NCBI GenBank assembly: GCA_040285825.1
Contig: JAUPSS010000002.1
Coordinates: 1,364,001-1,428,000, forward strand
Length of the DNA stretch: 64,000 bases
Origin: Eukaryota sp. TZLM1-RC
Lineage: Eukaryota > Protista > Metamonada: BaSk clade
Reading direction: 5' to 3'
Shown: positions 5,468-54,752 of the stretch, in pieces
How positions within the stretch are numbered: the stretch's first letter is position 1
How the letters are laid out: each line of letters begins with the position of its first letter
The notes under the pieces: model-generated
Databases searched by the model: none
What the model was told of the DNA's origin: nothing
What the model saw: the letters and a program-made list of their open reading frames with translations, nothing else
Program-made: the position numbers and the translations under genes

Positions 5468-6283
5468 TTAATGGAACGAAGAACAAGCTATAGCAAAGGC
5501 CATTAAAGGAGACAGTGGACTTCTGAAATCTAATATAAACGAATCTTCACCAGTCTTGCCAAACTGCAGTACAATCTCCTCATTACTCCCACAGGTAAGT
5601 TGAAAATTCTTTTGTGATGCCATACAAACCCTGCCTCCAAAGTTCAGAACGTATGCCTCAGACGATTCATCATAGACTGGTTCTTTTTGAGACAAAACTA
5701 AATCTTGCCCAGACTCTTGATCATGAATACAAGCTGCTACGAAACGTGGTCGTTTTGTGGTCTTTAGACTTCCAGAGAAAGAAATAGAAATAATTGGCCT
5801 TCTTATTGACTGATCACAATGGTCAAAGAGTCTAGACTCCCGGCTATTCGTTTTAAAACATAACTGTGAGTCCAGAATCCCTGCAACTGAGGGTGAACAG
5901 CGAGTAAGTTCATTGGGATCTGTAGAGAATAGCAATGATAATGAGGCTGTCTTCTTTCTCTTTCTAGCAACACAGAGCAGTTGCTTATCAGATTCACGGT
6001 ACAAGAAGTACTTTGGGTAAAGGTTGAGCAAACCTGGCCGTTCTCTTATTACTGTACATCGAAGAATCTTATGTGATGTTGGTGTATGAACATATGTGAT
6101 TGGATCGAGAGCAGTGGTCAGGCCAAGCAAATCTACTGATGTTGATGAAGTTGAGCTGTGATGTTTTGAAGACCTATGGACAGGAGTATCTGGATCTTTC
6201 ACAGGAGTAGACCCTGAAGCCTTTTTAGAAGGCGATACAAGGGTGGGATGTTTGTATGTTAAGGAAGGTGAAGTGTTCCACAT
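5468..6283 (-). CDS. Tubby-like protein
   Basis: C-terminal Tubby domain (RKRKK, YVLNFGGRV.MASQKNFQL, LQFGK, LDFRSPLSPLMAFAIA). The likely start is MWNTS at 6283; the longer ORF start at 6439 lies inside the Fanzor end repeat. Confidence 0.9.
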   Translation of the reverse strand: MWNTSPSLTYKHPTLVSPSKKASGSTPVKDPDTPVHRSSKHHSSTSSTSVDLLGLTTALDPITYVHTPTSHKILRCTVIRERPGLLNLYPKYFLYRESDKQLLCVARKRKKTASLSLLFSTDPNELTRCSPSVAGILDSQLCFKTNSRESRLFDHCDQSIRRPIISISFSGSLKTTKRPRFVAACIHDQESGQDLVLSQKEPVYDESSEAYVLNFGGRVCMASQKNFQLTCGSNEEIVLQFGKTGEDSFILDFRSPLSPLMAFAIACSSFH

Positions 6284-6377
6284 ATGATATTGATGAGTTG
6301 AAGTAAGTGATGAAGTGATGAATGGTCTGTCCAAAGCTGTGCTTAAGCAGTCAGTAGTGAGGATGAGCAAGGATATA

Positions 6378-6686
6378 CTGTGAATTTCACTTATCATGCA
6401 TTCCCCTGTCAAATTCACTCCTGTTTTCAACTTTCTCAATGTCTACTCACAGGCTGTAAGAGACATGTGGCGTCATTTGACAAAGACAATCATGATCTTC
6501 ATCAATGGGCTGCCTCACTCAAATACACCTACTGCTTTCACAGAACAAAGCCTCGCGACTTGATCTATTTAAGTGGATCTACCAAATGCTACTAAGGCAT
6601 TTGTAGATCGGTCTCAAAAGTTTTTCCAAAAATTAAAAACAAAATCAAATATCAGTGTTTCAAAAGTGTTTGTTTCTGTATGCTCA
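6378..6686 (-). ncRNA. Fanzor family F1 3' end / candidate omegaRNA scaffold (copy without adjacent ORF)
   Basis: Reverse complement of 8020-8302 and direct repeat of 49895-50200, both of which directly follow a Fanzor C-terminus. Contains several hairpins. Confidence 0.7.
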
Positions 6687-6689
6687 TTT

Positions 6690-8009
6690 CTGTTCTCGAA
6701 CACCACATCAATTTCAATCTGAATAATTCAAGAGACAGATTCTTTTTATTGAATTCATGTGAGTTTATCTTGAATCTCCTTCAAAGATTTCCTGCCACTG
6801 CTTAACTACTCTTTTCACATGATAAATTTACCTTTTCATCAAAGAAAACTGGTAAGCTTTTTCTCTTTAATCTTGAAATTTCACAATACTTACTCACTTT
6901 TATTTCTCATATGCATTGCTGGAAGAAGTTTAGAATAATACCTTTAGCTTCTCATAAAGGTTTTCACTTTCATGAGATACCTTCACATGTTTTCCACTCT
7001 GTGAAAAAAATTCCACTTATTGAAGGATCATCTTCCAAAACAAAGTTCATCAAAAATACATGTCTAAAACGAATATTCAAACAATGTTCTTACCAAAAAT
7101 TTAATATCAACAGAAAAAGTTTGAAAAATAGATTTAAAATTTTTTTATTGAAAACTAATGGTAATGAACTGCTTTTGACCTTTGAAGGTAAAAATAATGA
7201 CTCAGAAAACACAGATGAGCTGGATGAATCACCGAAAAAGAAACGAAGATTAAAAAAGGAAATGAAAAGTGACCCTGATGCCAACAAAACCAGAGAAACA
7301 CAGTTGAAGGGTACTAAACAATACCCCATCGAAGACGTAGACAACCAGTCGAAATCTTGCCTGAAATGCTCCTTATTGGCGTTGATCTGGGACAATCAAG
7401 ATTATGTGGTTACTTCTTAAATGATAATCAATGTGAAGTTATCACTTGTCCAACTGGCAGAAGATACATGACAAGACCTTCACCCAGTAAACACTCTCCC
7501 AACCAATATTCCGTTCAAAATTTCAACCAATATTTGAACCATTGTAATTTGGTCACGAGGAAAATGGACTGTGAAAGTAATCGCCAGAAATGGAAAATAA
7601 TTAAATTTGATAACCGTAGACGAAAAAAGAGACGCTTCCGTGAGAGTCTCAATAAATTTCAAAGACTGGCTAGACATCCTGAAAAACTCTACCTTGCTGT
7701 GGGCACTGCTAATTTCCCTTCTTATTGCCGAAAAGTCAATCGATATGGATCAGAAAGGGCTTTCAGAAAATGGTTGTGTTATCAAAAGGACGTGAAGCAC
7801 TTGTCAACCAGTGAATTAATACAAGCAAACTGTCCAGTTGTTGCATGGCCGAGAGTGCTCAATCAGGCTCATGGCAGATGCGTATTTGTACTGAGTGTCA
7901 AATAGTATATGACAGAGATATTTCCGCTGCAAAAAATATTCAAATTAAGAAGAAAGCGGAAATGTGGCCGGAAAGATACATTTGCCCAGAAGCTCTGTTG
8001 AGGAAATGA
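6690..8009 (+). pseudogene. Fanzor (TnpB-like RuvC nuclease), family F1, frameshifted and 5'-truncated
   Basis: Across frames: RuvC-I LIGVDLG, LAVG in place of the canonical E, rearranged RuvC-II SE(F)NTSKLSSCC, zinc finger CTEC and RuvC-III YDRDISAAKNI, plus an NLS-like PKKKRRLKK. Confidence 0.85.
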
Positions 8010-8302
8010 AAGGGGATCCTGAGCATACAGAAACAAAAACTTTAGAATAACTTATATTTTATTTTGTTTTTAATTTTTTGAAAAACCTTTTGAGACCGAT
8101 TTACAAATGCCCTGGTAGCATTTGGTAGATCCACTTAGATACATCAAGTCGCGAGCCTTTGTTCTGTGAAAGCATTAGGTGTATTTAAGTCAGGTAGCCC
8201 ATTGACGAAGATCATGATTGTTTTTGTCAAATGACGCTACATGTCTCTTACAGCCTGTGAGTAGACATTGAGAAAGTTGAAAACAGGAGTGAATCTCACC
8301 GG
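8010..8302 (+). ncRNA. Candidate omegaRNA / right end of the Fanzor F1 element
   Basis: Conserved noncoding segment immediately after the Fanzor stop codon. Homology to the other two copies ends just before TATA (8303-8306). Confidence 0.7.
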
Positions 8303-8393
8303 TATAATTGCAATTTAAAATGGGTGAATGTAAATTACCAATCCAATTGTTCCAACCCTAGTTTTTCTTTCTATACCTCAATAGTCATCTATC

Positions 8394-11300
8394 ATGGTAC
8401 TTCTATCACCTGAACCAAGAACTATTAAGTCTATTGCATCTTTACAACGGCGCTCCTTTTTTCAGCGGTTGGATGTACTTCCATTTCTTCTATTGTACAC
8501 AGTAATACTACCTTTTCTCCTCATCAATTCTACACGAATTCTAATATACATATCTTATCCAGTCCTTGTTTTTTTGCACATACTTCTCTTTCTCTTTCAA
8601 CAATGGTCTCTACGCTGTAAATGCTTCGTTTCCTACAAGCCATCCCCTGTAACCTCCTCTGACTCAATATGTGTCATAACCCTTCCGCATTGTGGTTCTT
8701 CCTCCATATCCCCCCTCATTATCAACAGCCACGGTACTTTCTTTGAACATCATCGTTCTATGTACTTCTACAACACTGATAAGAAGCAGTTTTACCCTCT
8801 CAAATACCCTGACGATCTTCCTCTCACTGCTTACGTGGCACACAAAGGTATCACGTCATCCGAAATTTCATCCCCTTTCCCTTCCAATACCTACTCCTTT
8901 CCCATTCCTTCCTTCCTTTCTTTGTTCAAAGAACATGCTTTGGCTCCTTTCTTTGTCTTCCAAGTCTTTTGCGTTCTATTATGGTGCTTGGATGATTACT
9001 GGTATTATTCTGTTTTTACCCTTGTTATGCTTGTTTTGTTCGAAGCTTCGATGGTCTTTAACCGACAGAAATCCCTCAAAGAACTAACCAACCTTTCTTC
9101 CAATCCTTTTGAAGTATTTGTTTATAGAGCTGAAAGGTGGACCAAGGTCTTAACTTCGGAGTTGTTGCCGTTGGACTTGGTTTCCCTTAGCATGGCGAAA
9201 AGGTCAACTATACCGTGTGATTGTGTGGTAGTTGCTGGAACGTGTATAGTAGACGAGTCGTTGTTAACTGGTGAATCAGTCCCGCAGTACAAGGAGTCTT
9301 TAGAAGTCAATGGAAGTAGTGAGACTTTTCTTGAAGAAGAGAAGGAACACAAGGTTTCTTGTCTTTATTCAGGATCTGAAATGATTTCAATCAAATCTGA
9401 TTGCTTTAACGGCTTAAAGTCCCCAGATAACGGAGCCATTTGTGTAGTGACAAGAACTGGGTTTGCCACCAAACAAGGAAGTCTCTTGAAGTCAATGCTA
9501 TACCAAACAGAAAAGGTTTCGATTAATAACAAAGAAGCCGGCATCTTTTTGACCATCATTCTTGCATTTGCTACATTAGCAAGTGGCTATCTGTTTAAAG
9601 TAGGTTACGAGCAGCTCAAAGGCTCAGAACTAGAAGAATCTCAAAGAAATTCAAAACTTTTCAAACTAATATTGAACTGTCTGTTAACGCTCACCTCAGT
9701 CGTCCCCCCTGAATTACCAATGGAGCTCTCTTTAGCAGTTTCTTCTTCACTCAACTCCTTGGCCAAACTGGGAATTTTCTGTACCGAACCTTTTAGAATT
9801 CCCGTTGCAGGCAAAGTCAATGTCTGCTTATTTGACAAGACTGGTACCATTACGGAAGACTCTCATGTAGTTGTAGGAGTTTGTTCATGTGACCAGAATG
9901 CAGTCCAACCAGAGCTAAGAAGTGTTAGTGATCTTGATTTGCTTAGTAGAGTTACACTGGCAGGAGCAAATTCTTTATCTGTGGTGAATTCTGTTTTGGT
10001 GGGCGATTCAATGGAAAAAAGTGCAATGAAATCTGCTGGGTTTAAGCTTAAATCTGATAATTCATTGGTTGCTGTTAAAAGAGGAACGCAAAATGTGCAA
10101 TTAAAAATCTTGAAAAGATTTCCTTTTCGTTCTGTTTTAAAGAGAATGTCGACTATTTGTCGTTATGGACTGACCAATAAGGGCAGTTCACAACTCCTTT
10201 ACCTTACAAAAGGGGCTCCTGAAGCAATGAGGTCAATGTTCAAGGAAGTTCCTGTGAATTATGACCGGTTCAGTAAGTTTTATGAGCTGACAGGTCATCG
10301 AGTTCTTGCACTTGGTTACAAGCTCACTGATTTAAAGGTTGAAAATTTGAACTCTGTGACACGCACTGACACGGAAAATGATCTCATTTTCGCAGGTCTT
10401 TTGGTATTCAAATGCCCAGTTCGTCAAGGGTCTAATGAAATTATTCAAGAATTAGTAGGATCTAGACATCGTTCTGTGATTCTAACCGGTGATTCGGTGC
10501 TGACAGGTGTACACGTGGCACAATCAGTCAAAATGATTGGTCAACCAAAATCTTTGAGATCATGTCTTGTTTCCAAAAAGTCAAGGAAGCTGATCAATTT
10601 TTGTAAGTGTGGCAAAAACCTTGAGTTTTCTCAACCATTGGTGTTGATTGGGTCAGAAAGTAAGTATTTTTGGACCACTGTTGACCATCGGTTCGGTGAG
10701 GTAAGAATTGATCTCGAAGACCCTTGCCTTTCTTGCTTTGAACTTGCAATTGATGGCAATGGTCTTGAATTTTTGAAGAGTGAACATCCTCTTCTCCTGG
10801 ACAAAATATTTGAATTTATTACTGTTATAGGTAGAGCAGACCCTACCCAAAAATCTTTTGTTTCCTCTTTTCTTATTGACAAGGGTCTTATTGTATCCAT
10901 GATTGGGGATGGGTCGAACGACTGTGGAGCCCTTCGTAAGTCTAATATTGGGATTGGGTTAGTTGAAGGGAATGAAAGAATCCAGAAGCTGAGGAGGACC
11001 TATTTGAGAAATAGAAATGAAAATAGAGGTAAAGATAACAGGCCAAAAAGAGTTGATAAAAAGGTAAAGAAGGTTTCAAGCACGTTCTCAATCAAAAATG
11101 ATTGGAATGATGACGAGATTAGTCACGTGAAGCCAGGAGATGCTTCATTGGCAGCTTCCTTTTCCTCTTGTCTTCGCGGAATTGAGGGAATGAGACACGT
11201 GTTAACTTTTGGTAGAAGTTCCTTGACTGCAACACTTCAAGTCTACAAGATTTTAGCTGTAAATTCCTTAATATCAGGATATTTATTATCATTTTTGTTT

Positions 11301-11918
11301 GTCAAGGGAGTTGAATTTGGGGACTCTCAAATGGTTATTACTGGTCTCTTGACAGCTCTTTTGTTCTTTGTGGTGTCTCGTAGTCAGCCAGAAAAGGATC
11401 AATACTTATCATTTTGCCGACCACCACCAAGAGTAATTTCATTTTACACTGTTTTTTCTGTTGCTTTTCAATGTATAACCCATTTTTTTGCACTCAAGTT
11501 TGGACTTTTTCTTCTCGGGCCAGAAGCTGTAAATAAAGTCGTGGATGTAACTGACTTTGATTCGGAATTTCAGCCTTCCTCCATTAGTTCCCTGGTGTTT
11601 ATTCTTTCTCAAGCGTTCAGCTGTGCAACCTTTATCATTAACTATAGGGGCAAACCGTTTTCTTTACCTATATTTAGAAATAAGCCTCTAATCTATTCAT
11701 CAATTGGCTTTTACTTTTTCATTTTCTCCTTTTTACTCCTTCCAGAATGTTTTTTACATACATGTCTTCACATCATTTCCTTTTCCTGGGATGTAAGGTT
11801 CAAACTGCTTGGGATCATTGCTGTTGATTTCTTATTTTGTTTTAGTTTCGAATGGTTCTTCAAAACTTTGTTTACGGAAAGACAGATTACGCCTCCTGTA
11901 ACTCCAATTCGAAATTGA
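8394..11918 (+). CDS. ATP13A1: P5A-type ATPase (ATP13A1/Spf1)
   Basis: LTGES, [17 protein letters not shown], KGAPE and GDGSND motifs, plus [29 protein letters not shown]. Confidence 0.95.
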   Translation: [1174 protein letters not shown]

Positions 11919-49666: not shown

Positions 49667-49894
49667 TCTCTTAGATGAACAATTGAATTGATAAAATCCC
49701 TGAAATGGAAAGGTATTCCATCTGTTGTTGTTGTATTAATATTGTTCACAGGATTGCGAATTGCAACTGCTATAGTCACTTATTTTACAAAACCAAGTTG
49801 TTTATTACACCTTCCATGAGGTTACAACTGTTCAGTTTCTAAACATCAATAAGCGAACTGATTTAGTTCAGGAACTAAGCTAACTTTCATTATA

Positions 49895-51063
49895 CTGTGA
49901 ATTTCACTTATCATGCATTCCCCTGTGAAATTCACTCCTGTTTTCAACTTTCTCAATGTCTACTCACAGGCTGTAAGAGACACGTAGCATCATTTACCAA
50001 AGACAATCATGATCTTCATCAATGGGCTACCTCACCTAAATACACCTACTGCTTTCACAGAACTAAGCCTTGCAACTTGATGTATCTAAGTGGATCTACC
50101 AAATGCTACTAAGGTATTTGTAGATCGGTCTCAAAAGTTTTTCAAAAAAAATTGAAATAAAATATCAGTTTTTCAAAAGTTTTTGTTTCTGTATGCTCAT
50201 AGTCCCCATTCATCATCTCAACAGAGCTTCTGGGCAAATGTATCTTTCCGGTCACAATTCCGCTTTCTTCTTTATTTGAATATTTTTTGCAGCGGAAATA
50301 TCTCTGTCATATACTATTTGACACTCAGTACAAATACGCATCTGCCATGAGCTTGCTTGAATATTCTCGGCCATGCAACAACTGAACAGTTTGCTTGTAT
50401 TAAATTCACTGGTTGACAAGTCCTTCACAACCATTTTCTGAAAGCTCTTGCTGATCCATATCGATTGACTTTTCGCCAATGAGAAGGGAAATTAGCAGAA
50501 CCCACAGCAAGATAGAGTTTATCAGGATGTCCAGCCAGCCTTTGAAATTTGTTGAGAGTCTCTCTGAACCGAGAGACCTGTCTTGTGGGCATTCTGGAAG
50601 AAATCCATTGTAAAAGATATGGAGTAATTGGCGTTGGCCTTTAGATGTGGAAGGCTTTGGAAATTAACCAGTGGTGATGACGGTCATAAACAGATACCAT
50701 ACATCCTGTTCCACTAAAGCTCTAGATGCCAACGGAAAATTTAGAAGAAAAGATTGAAGCAGTAAAGAAGCTTCATGACAAATCTCGGTGACCAAAGGAA
50801 GGTCAGTCCGAATTTGTTGCACCGCTGCAGGGGTCAGCGGCGAGTTAATTGCACAAGACCGAGTGAATACACGTGACACAGAGGGGGTGTCTGTCATGTA
50901 GTGAGAATAAACACAATAAACATCTCATCTATCAAATTTTACACTTGTCACCCCATTTTCGACTTCTGGTTGCCTGTTCTGGGAGGTTTTTAACCCTCAA
51001 CTTGGTTTTGGGAGGTTTTCACTATTCCCACACTTTCCCCTAAATTAGGTTCATAAACTAGGT
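49895..51063 (-). mobile_element. Fanzor F1 internal-deletion derivative: left end, ORF N-terminus (50897-~50575), ORF C-terminus (~50570-50210) and omegaRNA-like right end (50200-49895)
   Basis: FRETLNKFQRLAGHP...STSEFNTSKLFSCC...CTECQIVYDRDISAAKNI, homologous to 7636-8009; same 3' segment. Confidence 0.85.
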
Positions 51064-51098: not shown

Positions 51099-51740
51099 GT
51101 GTCTCACAGAATTCGCTACATATCTAAAGGAAACTCAACTCTCTGGTCTCGCACAAAACGAATCAACCTTATTGGCTCTGTTGCACCTTCTGTTTCTTTA
51201 TTCTCATCTCCAACACCTGGTGTTCTCTCCCGATGTTTTCCTCCTCATGCTACTGGTAGAAAGAATTTCCAGTTACCCTTGTTCTCTAACATGGTTTCTT
51301 GTAGTGTAGGTGTTCATCATACATTGACACTCACTGCTTGTGGTAATTGCTATGGATTTGGTCTGAACAAATTCTACCAATTAGGCAACAACTACCCCCA
51401 AAGCAGCACTTTCAAATCTCAACAACCACAACTACTTCTCTCCAATGTTCTCTCCTATGCTCCTGGTGGACGTTATTCCCTTATCCTTACCTCTGATCAC
51501 AAGCTTTTTTCTTGTGGGAGAAACGACTTTGTCCAATGTGGAGTTGGTGATGAAACTTTGATGGCAACCTGTGATTATTCTTAGCTTAATGAACCAATAG
51601 GTCCTTTTCGCAGTGTTGTCATTCCTTCCTTGACTTTAGTTGACTCGACGGAAAATGTTAACATTGAGCTAAACGAACGAGAGCTGGAAGCCCTTTTCAA
51701 TACTGTTGAAGATATCTCTGTTCATTTAGACAATCTGTAA
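51099..51740 (+). pseudogene. RCC1-repeat fragment, followed in frame after a TAG (51582-51584) by a 51-aa COMM-like tail
   Basis: SVGVHHTL.LTACGNCYGFGLNKFYQLG and GGRYSL.LT....LFSCGRNDF.QCG.G repeats. Confidence 0.6.
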
Positions 51741-52004
51741 TAAAGCAAGTTATTTTGTAAATAAATAGTTGATGTTTTTTGTTGTTTATTTGAACATTAT
51801 TGGCATGTTATTATGCAAAGAAGCTCCTTAACTGTGTGTTCTAGGTTTTCTGTGTTTTATGTCTACACCATTAAGTAAAAGTTAATGGATAACAAAGTTA
51901 GATTTGACCTTCGCAAGGTCAAGGGCTCGTCGAGTAGGGCTACACTACTTTCATTTGTGATGTAAAGTATTAATTTTTCTTTTTAATTAATTAATTTTAT
52001 TCTA

Positions 52005-53799: not shown

Positions 53800-54729
53800 T
53801 GGAAAAATCCAAAATGCTACAGATTCACTGTAGTAAAAGACTATAACTTGTAACAAATATGGAGGCTTCTCACCAACACTATCCTCTACAAAATAATCTA
53901 CAATTGTCTTGATTTTGATACGTGCTAACTTGTTACGATTCCATTCCTTATCCTTTCCATCATATTCTTCTCTACAAACATCAGATTGACATCTTAACAA
54001 AGCATGACATTTCACAGCAGGTTATTTCTCTCTCATTCATGGTCTAGGATTCTCAACATCAAGAAACACTTTTACTGGTTTATAACAAGTTGGACACTTT
54101 GAAGATATGTTTCTTTCATCAACTAAACATACTGTATAACCATTTCACTTAAAGAAATTTCTCCATCCAACTCCTCTACTTGATCGATGATGCTTTAGAT
54201 TCTTTATCTTATTGCCATTGTCACCAAACATTAGCATAGTGTCTTCTTGCTTCCATTGCTTCTCAGCCATTCTTTTTAATAACTTAGCCTCTGCTTTTGA
54301 TGATGGACATATCTTTGCATTTTCTGAATGTGCCATATCATTAAACAGTAGTAATAAAATGTAAATGTAATGTTTATCAGCTTGGAAGCAACATAAGAAT
54401 AGAAATTATTATAAATAAAAGATTTTGATGATTCTTTTGATAAAGTAGCTTCAGTTATTTCCACTTTGATTCCATTTTGTAAAATGTACTCTTTCTTTTT
54501 CAATTTTCTGAATTTTTGGTGAACTCTCGATACCCTTGACCACTCCAATTCTGTCAATCTCAGCCACTTATATCGTTTGTCTCTTTTTAGTTGGTCTTTT
54601 GCATTAAGTTTGAATCTTTTTTGACTACAAAAATATAGTAAATCACTTTTTCCACTTTTGCCTGTTGTGGCAGGTTTTTAACCCTCAACTCTCTTGTCCC
54701 TCACTTTTCCCTCACTTCATAAACTAGGT
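53800..54729 (-). pseudogene. Fanzor1 family F2 remnant (C-terminal half) with left-end sequence
   Basis: Joined frames: EATLSKESSKS...F.SY; MFGD...KHH.SSRGVGWR; VCLVDERNISSKCPTC; VENPRP; KCHALLRCQSDVC...WNRN..A...GEKPPYL. Confidence 0.85.
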
Positions 54730-54752
54730 TCTGGTTATATCGCAACAGAACC

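Follow-up and report, generated by a model that had tools for sequence, protein, structure and literature searches.

Fanzors are eukaryotic RNA-guided nucleases that are under development as compact genome editors. The locus described here lies at positions 6688-8309 of a 64,000-nucleotide stretch (the window) of contig JAUPSS010000002.1 from Skoliomonas litria TZLM1-RC, and it is best introduced by comparison with systems already described. The Fanzor1 element SPu-1 (protein SpuFz1) of the eukaryote Spizellomyces punctatus is a single-gene element of ~2.1-2.4 kb that encodes a TnpB-like protein of ~630-650 residues with basic runs resembling a nuclear localisation signal (NLS); it is present in many copies per genome, some of them degenerate, and has a structured noncoding 3' region by its right end (Bao & Jurka 2013, PMC3627910; Saito et al. 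2023, PMC10432273). The window family is alike in each of these respects, the structured 3' region being a prediction in its case. Unlike SPu-1, whose terminal inverted repeats (TIRs) are 33 bp long and which has TA target-site duplications, the window family shows neither. In this it is closer to the TnpB-only insertion sequences of the IS200/IS605 or IS607 type (IS1341-like), which likewise have no TIRs, no evident target-site duplication and no internal transposase, and whose 3' right end adjoins the stop codon of the nuclease; the window family differs from them in residing in a eukaryote and in its much larger protein, with a long helical N-terminus and NLS-like inserts. A third point of reference is the Fanzor/TnpB2 group, for example ApmFNuc (E467) and TvTnpB (E323), described by Jiang et al. 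(2023, PMC10530073). As in that group, a Gly takes the place of the canonical RuvC-II Glu in the window family, and a conserved alternative Glu comes further on, shortly ahead of the TS...C zinc-ribbon motif. Its spacing is 37 rather than ~45 residues, and its first zinc-ribbon Cys pair is CC rather than CxxC.

We conclude, with a probability of about 0.85, that 6688-8309 is a dead, 5'-truncated copy (copy 1) of a multicopy, TIR-less element of ~2.4 kb, whose only gene encoded a Fanzor-type RuvC nuclease of ~650 residues. The present arrangement would have arisen by two head-to-head insertions into the intergenic region between a divergent pair of host genes (a Tub-family gene and a P5A-type ATPase gene), followed by a single deletion that removed the 5' parts of both. 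In the active family, by analogy with characterised Fanzor and TnpB systems, the right end (RE) would have been transcribed with or after the open reading frame (ORF) as an omegaRNA scaffold, with read-through past its 3' boundary (...CACAGT) into flanking DNA supplying the guide. The role of the nuclease would have been maintenance of the transposon by homing rather than transposition itself. As a dead copy, copy 1 has no direct use; its value is in the family context, which extends Fanzors to free-living metamonads, and in intact relatives from the sister strain TZLM3-RCL, including a fusion to an XPG nuclease.

Copy 1 and the canonical element

Homologues of the separate frame pieces are annotated as hypothetical proteins of Eukaryota sp. 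TZLM1-RC, and the family is present in the genome as dozens of annotated ORF fragments; the S. litria assembly has 16 contigs, an N50 of 3,724,615 and 55% repeats (PMC11316075). Eight copies were compared: copy 1 and a second copy in the window (copy 2), together with six further genomic copies (L001-L006). The canonical unit is ~2.4 kb (L003:3992-6372) and consists of a left end of ~160 bp, a single ORF of ~650 residues beginning MTD(T/I)PSVSRVFTRSC, and an RE of ~270-320 bp that terminates ...GAAATTCACAGT. The flank beyond this terminus differs from copy to copy, the common outer boundary ...AAATTCACAGT bordering different DNA in each. We found no TIR in L003 or L004, no target-site duplication at the flanks of the copies examined and no transposase gene inside the element, nor was a TnpA partner identified.

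Homology to copy 1 begins exactly at window position 6688, where five other copies extend ~790-810 bp further left through the shared left end and the N-terminal coding region. Copy 1 is without this first ~790 bp of the canonical element; from canonical position L003:4779 onwards its body is collinear with L002-L006 at 86-89% identity. Alignment to the family shows that the body has lost a single nucleotide at each of two places, ~7315 and ~7815, as located against the majority consensus of the family copies, and that a TAA stop lies in frame at 6803-6805; the motifs are spread over three plus-strand reading frames (6680-8009). The last ~27 nt of its RE are deleted or rearranged relative to the other copies. 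There is no uninterrupted full-length ORF, and the Fanzor locus described in an earlier note on this DNA is neither self-contained nor intact. The motifs quoted there (GVDLG, LAVG, NTSKLSSCC, CTEC, DRDISAAKNI and PKKKRRLKK) are all present on the plus strand. Of the two frameshifts it listed, that near 7815 stands, the one near 7340 belongs at ~7315, and the TAA went unlisted. The frame pieces were searched separately and joined only through natural longer relatives (alignments A5, A8 and A9).

Relationship to TnpB and Fanzor nucleases

Several profile comparisons place the family in the TnpB/Fanzor superfamily. The undisrupted C-terminal piece of copy 2 (50252-50479, minus strand) matches Pfam PF07282, the Cas12f1-like TNB domain, at 31.8 bits (E 1.6e-7; gathering cut-off 26.3 bits), as do the relatives P0025, P0026, P0029 and P0036 (28-33 bits); the frameshift-split piece of copy 1 reaches 20.7 bits and stays under the cut-off. 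The NCBIfam models guided_TnpB, IS200_TnpB and IS607_TnpB match pieces of the family at E 1e-6 to 1e-3 (guided_TnpB at 1.3e-6), with whole-protein scores far under the family cut-offs (28 against 100 bits). Comparison of the family alignment A9 with two annotated phage TnpBs by hhalign gave a probability of 97.1% and an E-value of 5.3e-11 over 94 columns, running from RuvC-II through the TNB domain to RuvC-III. When a profile of three Skoliomonas families was searched against the PDB, UnCas12m4a (E 6.9e-5) and LaTranC (E 0.011) were recovered, the zinc-ribbon stretch being covered. The 11 weak tblastn matches in phages all coincide with TnpB, OrfB or transposase genes wherever the record carries annotation. 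In the ESM-Atlas, the nearest clusters (score 0.97) combine DUF8286 with PF07282; giant viruses are their main source, and one cluster is mostly eukaryotic (Chlorophyta). This is a lead rather than a test.

The arrangement of the active site is of the Fanzor type. The hhalign alignment pairs the (A/V)(M/V)G(D/S) of the family with VCVES of TnpB, placing a Gly opposite the catalytic Glu. An alternative Glu, in (S/D)E(F/Y)NTSK, lies 37 residues downstream of this Gly and is kept in all three Skoliomonas families. Published Fanzors and TnpB2 proteins have Gly or Pro in place of the canonical RuvC-II Glu, with an alternative Glu ~45 residues away (PMC10530073). The RuvC-I motif, (V/I)G(V/I)D(L/P)G, is also conserved across the three families; its IGVDLG form is collinear with GIDVG of TnpB solely in a relaxed hhalign alignment (mact 0.05), in which column confidence is low. 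The order D...G...E...Zn...D is maintained in all three families, diverged as they are. Both NLS-like clusters of copy 1 (7232-7344) fall in a loop right before RuvC-I, and basic runs including RRRR(R) are kept in the family copies. Judged by sequence comparison, the window gene derives from TnpB and encoded a nuclease of the Fanzor type, with a rearranged RuvC-II active site. Its assignment within the Fanzors is made on resemblance to Fanzor1 in size (~650 residues), architecture and large N-terminal helical region only.

A word-indexed protein search returned matches solely from the Skoliomonas lineage and, as far as the searches reach, the family seems confined to Skoliomonas strains. Similarity to the solved Fanzors is undetectable by HMMER, and the clade is so diverged that standard hidden Markov model searches against those proteins miss it. 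The suggestion of a divergent Fanzor family of this protist, made in the earlier note, is thus supported by PF07282, by the hhalign match to TnpB and by the Skoliomonas-only homologues; it had named a lack of profile or structural similarity to TnpB as the outcome that would count against it, and the profile comparison found similarity.

Relatives in a sister strain

Intact relatives occur in Skoliomonas sp. TZLM3-RCL: P0036 (1323 residues), P0026, P0025 and the P0029 family (592 residues). Their Fanzor part is collinear with the window family at 22-54% identity, with the same set of motifs and the same Pfam domain. P0036, the closest intact relative (L009:3001-6972), is a single uninterrupted ORF in which XPG_N and XPG_I are joined to Fanzor; this N-terminal XPG/FEN-type nuclease domain distinguishes it from the S. 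litria family, which is without one. A literature search returned no paper combining Fanzor with Skoliomonas, metamonads or XPG. Further P0036-type copies are P0034, P0031 and P0032, and one at L010:1185-4149 is split into two gene models.

The 3' tails of the P0029 family are ~105 nt long and finish ...TTTTGAAAAACACAGA (...AAACACAGA) at L013:4279-4386, L011:4779-4890 and L012:4279-4400. Host start codons follow two of them, at 0 nt (an RtcB gene) and 4 nt (a PDCD2_C gene); the third copy diverges earlier. No alignable DNA was found between the TZLM3-RCL 3' tails (~105-110 nt to the next host ATG) and the ~300-nt RE of the window family. The sole feature common to the two is a short TTTTG(A)GACCGATC before a hairpin, which may be chance.

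The right end and the inverted arm

The RE occurs three times in the window: 3' of copy 1, 3' of copy 2, and inverted at 6374-6687, where it abuts the truncation point of copy 1. This inverted, solo RE is 314 bp long and 91.5% complementary to 8020-8302; the Tub-family gene lies on the side of its outer end, ...GAAATTCACAGT. The arm is unique to the window locus: none of the five other full copies has it on the left, nor does any other copy, and it therefore does not represent a TIR of the family. In sequence the solo RE is closer to those of L006 and L003 (96% and 95%) than to that of copy 1 (90%), and of the substitutions derived in either, 12 are found in the solo RE and 19 in the copy 1 RE, 1 being common to both. 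Two RE subfamilies can be distinguished by an AT-rich insert of ~50 nt shortly downstream of the stop codon (window ~8040-8087; columns 87-150 of alignment A11), which is present in both window copies, the inverted arm and L005 and missing from L002, L003, L004 and L006. Mean pairwise identity is 0.90-0.94 for the RE and 0.91-0.96 for the coding region, and conservation is flat along the element. The ~290 nt of conserved noncoding DNA that the earlier note recorded downstream of the gene is therefore common to every copy, being the right end of the family, and is no better conserved than the coding DNA.

Two reading frames touch the RE. The last 21 nt of the inverted arm (6375-6395, minus strand) read ATGATAAGTGAAATTCACAGT and contain an ATG in frame with the Tub-family ORF 5468-6439 (minus strand), with no stop for ~90 nt; we regard this as probably a coincidence, because the same read-out meets a stop in L003 and copy 2. 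Several decayed copies also have a stop-free frame of 71-76 codons running antisense through the RE (6380-6595 and 49897-50112 on the plus strand, L003:6154-6384 on the minus strand), which, opening with GTG and lacking an ATG close to its beginning, is probably not a eukaryotic gene.

The RE lies directly 3' of the ORF and has a sharp outer boundary followed by variable sequence. The same 3' placement is seen for the omegaRNA of characterised Fanzors (PMC10432273, PMC10530073); this positional argument applies equally to any transposon end. By analogy, we consider it somewhat likely that the RE served as omegaRNA, and treat it as a candidate only. The downstream omegaRNA proposed in the earlier note keeps the support of its 3' position and a modestly stable predicted fold; the segment is nevertheless the right end of the element, with neither covariation nor an Rfam match.

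Host genes beyond the right ends

A well-supported host gene in the same orientation begins 72-226 bp past five of the eight REs (both window copies, the inverted arm, L003 and L005). Those of L002 and L006 have only short ORFs of unannotated family downstream, and that of L004 has none. In the window, the RE forms the proximal upstream DNA of both the Tub-family and the P5A-type ATPase gene: the open frame of the former runs into the solo RE, its first host ATG being ~88 nt past the RE end, and the ATG of the latter is 85 nt after the RE of copy 1. Exact docking of the window-family REs onto start codons was considered and rejected, the distances varying from 72 to 226 bp. That REs recur a short way upstream of host genes is relevant to the way in which such elements select their targets.

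Alternative interpretations

A number of observations weigh against the interpretation preferred here. Each of the eight copies that were compared is defective, L001-L006 all being interrupted, and because of this an activity of the window family itself is not demonstrable; the earlier note had proposed to search the genome for intact copies, and intact relatives are present in TZLM3-RCL. A family-only profile searched against the PDB gave no Fanzor or TnpB match, and a profile search of 1.84 billion representative proteins gave no non-Skoliomonas protein at E<=0.001. AlphaFold2 models of two intact relatives, from shallow alignments, were poor (pLDDT 42.8 and 36.0). The predicted sense-strand fold of the RE (-95.8 kcal/mol, z -3.6; copy 1 RE z -4.0) is only modestly better than those of the antisense strand and of a coding segment of equal length (both z ~-2.7). 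None of 86 pairs showed a compensatory change in RNAalifold across the eight copies, which is uninformative because it is expected of neutrally decaying copies, and the RE has no match in Rfam. A foldback origin of the inverted arm, taken up below, would also alter the proposed history.

A merely accidental likeness of the motifs to TnpB/Fanzor, or their origin in some unrelated protein with a zinc ribbon, would agree with the low scores against the TnpB models (28 against 100 bits) and with the want of a confident fold in either AlphaFold2 model. We consider this extremely improbable: the motifs are not chance, because several members exceed the PF07282 cut-off and hhalign reaches E 5e-11 to TnpB across RuvC-II, the TNB domain and RuvC-III, and the order D...G...E...Zn...D is conserved in the three Skoliomonas families. 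The locus also has the outward look of a genuine TIR-bounded, foldback-type Fanzor transposon (6374-8309) with TIRs of ~300 bp, as arms of 283-314 bp that are 91.5% complementary bracket the ORF and the arm ends 11 nt past a stop codon. Against this, five other copies have no left arm and continue into a ~790-810 bp left end with N-terminal coding DNA, the canonical copies L003 and L004 have no TIR, and the ORF of copy 1 is visibly truncated relative to theirs; such a transposon is very unlikely, and the unit 6405-8302 considered as one was dropped after alignment of the other genomic copies. A more serious contender, improbable all the same, is that the arm was made when copy 1 inserted, by foldback or template-switch repair copying its own RE, with no second insertion. 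Membership of both arms in the AT-rich RE subfamily, a breakpoint just past the stop codon and the error-prone repair evident in the internal-deletion derivatives of the family would all suit such an event. It accounts less well for arms with 1 derived substitution in common and a ~1.6-fold difference in divergence from the consensus (19 against 12 changes), and for an arm that keeps the complete native RE terminus at its outer end, beside a flank of its own, where the terminus of copy 1 is damaged; the subfamily marker, moreover, is found too in copy 2 and L005. We therefore prefer two head-to-head insertions followed by one deletion.

A different question is whether the RE is mainly a transposon end, or an outward promoter or leader for the neighbouring host gene, rather than an omegaRNA, which would be compatible with the interpretation preferred here. 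The same-orientation genes 72-226 bp past five of eight REs, the P0029-family REs of TZLM3-RCL that abut host ATGs at 0 and 4 nt, and the RE immediately upstream of each divergent window gene all point in this direction. The variable, unfixed distances in the window family do not, and an element surviving in a compact genome tends in any case to occupy intergenic DNA; we hold this as a possible, rather doubtful reading. More speculative still, and in our judgement unlikely, is that elements of this clade were directed to the 5' sides of host genes with the RE toward the gene, so that the divergent pair was hit from each side and its two REs now both act as promoters, having been guide scaffold first and leader or promoter later. 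If true, the RNA-guided nuclease or the transposase of the element would have done the targeting, and the head-to-head pair of REs would be no accident.

Feature coordinates and copy 2

Table 1. Features of the window discussed in the text, with position, strand and remarks
Feature	Position	Strand	Remarks
Copy 1, 5'-truncated Fanzor element copy	6688-8309	+	S. litria TZLM1-RC window
Copy 1 Fanzor pseudogene body	6688-8009	+	~last two-thirds of ~650-residue ORF
NLS-like basic run PKKKRRLKK	7232-7258	+	read from sequence
Second basic run HRRRRQ	7327-7344	+	read from sequence
RuvC-I IGVDLG	7375-7392	+	Asp codon 7384-7386
LAVGTANF	7693-7716	+	Gly 7702-7704 at site of TnpB canonical RuvC-II Glu (hhalign)
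STSE, alternative RuvC-II Glu	7804-7815	+	Glu codon 7813-7815
NTSKLSSCC, TNB zinc ribbon, 3' of 1-nt deletion	7818-7844	+	
ICTEC, TNB zinc ribbon	7884-7898	+	
RuvC-III YDRDISAAKNI	7908-7940	+	aligns to TnpB DRDVNAAKNI and Cas12m DRDTNAARNI
Copy 1 stop codon	8007-8009	+	
Copy 1 RE, omegaRNA-scaffold candidate	8010-8309	+	eight-RE alignment
Solo RE of another copy of the family, left arm of pseudo-TIR	6374-6687	-	abuts copy 1 truncation point
Tub-family host gene	5468-6285	-	Pfam Tub, E 4e-41
P5A-type ATPase host gene	8394-11918	+	Pfam E1-E2_ATPase; 2TM_P5A-ATPase hairpin at residues 20-82
Copy 2, internal-deletion derivative	49892-51052	-	
Copy 2 left end and N-terminus	51052-50566	-	L003:3968-4480 matches 51079-50566
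Copy 2 C-terminus and right end	50571-49892	-	L003:5721-6374 matches
Family N-terminal coding piece MTDTPSVSRVFTRSC...EICHEASLLLQSFLLNF...	50664-50897	-	

Copy 2 carries an internal deletion of ~1.24 kb, a 16-bp deletion and a premature TGA. Its N-terminal piece, which can be aligned with the Fanzor part of both P0036 and P0029, is the true family N-terminus: the ORF begins in the same way in L001-L005. The proposal to supply the missing N-terminus of copy 1 from 50897-50575 was thus well founded as regards 50897-50664; a reconstruction from window pieces still falls ~100 residues short, as the canonical segment L003:4480-4779 is absent from both window copies. L001 is likewise an internal-deletion derivative, with breakpoints other than those of copy 2.

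Just beyond the left end of copy 2, the DNA (51102-51883, minus strand) is 96-97% identical to that bordering the left end of L002 (L002:3043-3799) and includes a fragment of an MJ1316-domain gene. The shared flank may reflect either a segmental duplication that carried the Fanzor copy or a larger composite unit. Beside the truncated copy in L001 lie a PolB-type exonuclease ORF and then another Fanzor family (L001:6633-8918 and 9788-10177), which bears the motifs VVCDPGKRD and IKEAFTSAKCPVC and is broken by an unrelated insertion on the minus strand at 8921-9715. The initial ~105 nt of the family left end (starting near L003:3992) recur at 73% identity at window 54648-54731 (minus strand), beside a different Fanzor family, and the two families appear, from this match, to share a left-end module.

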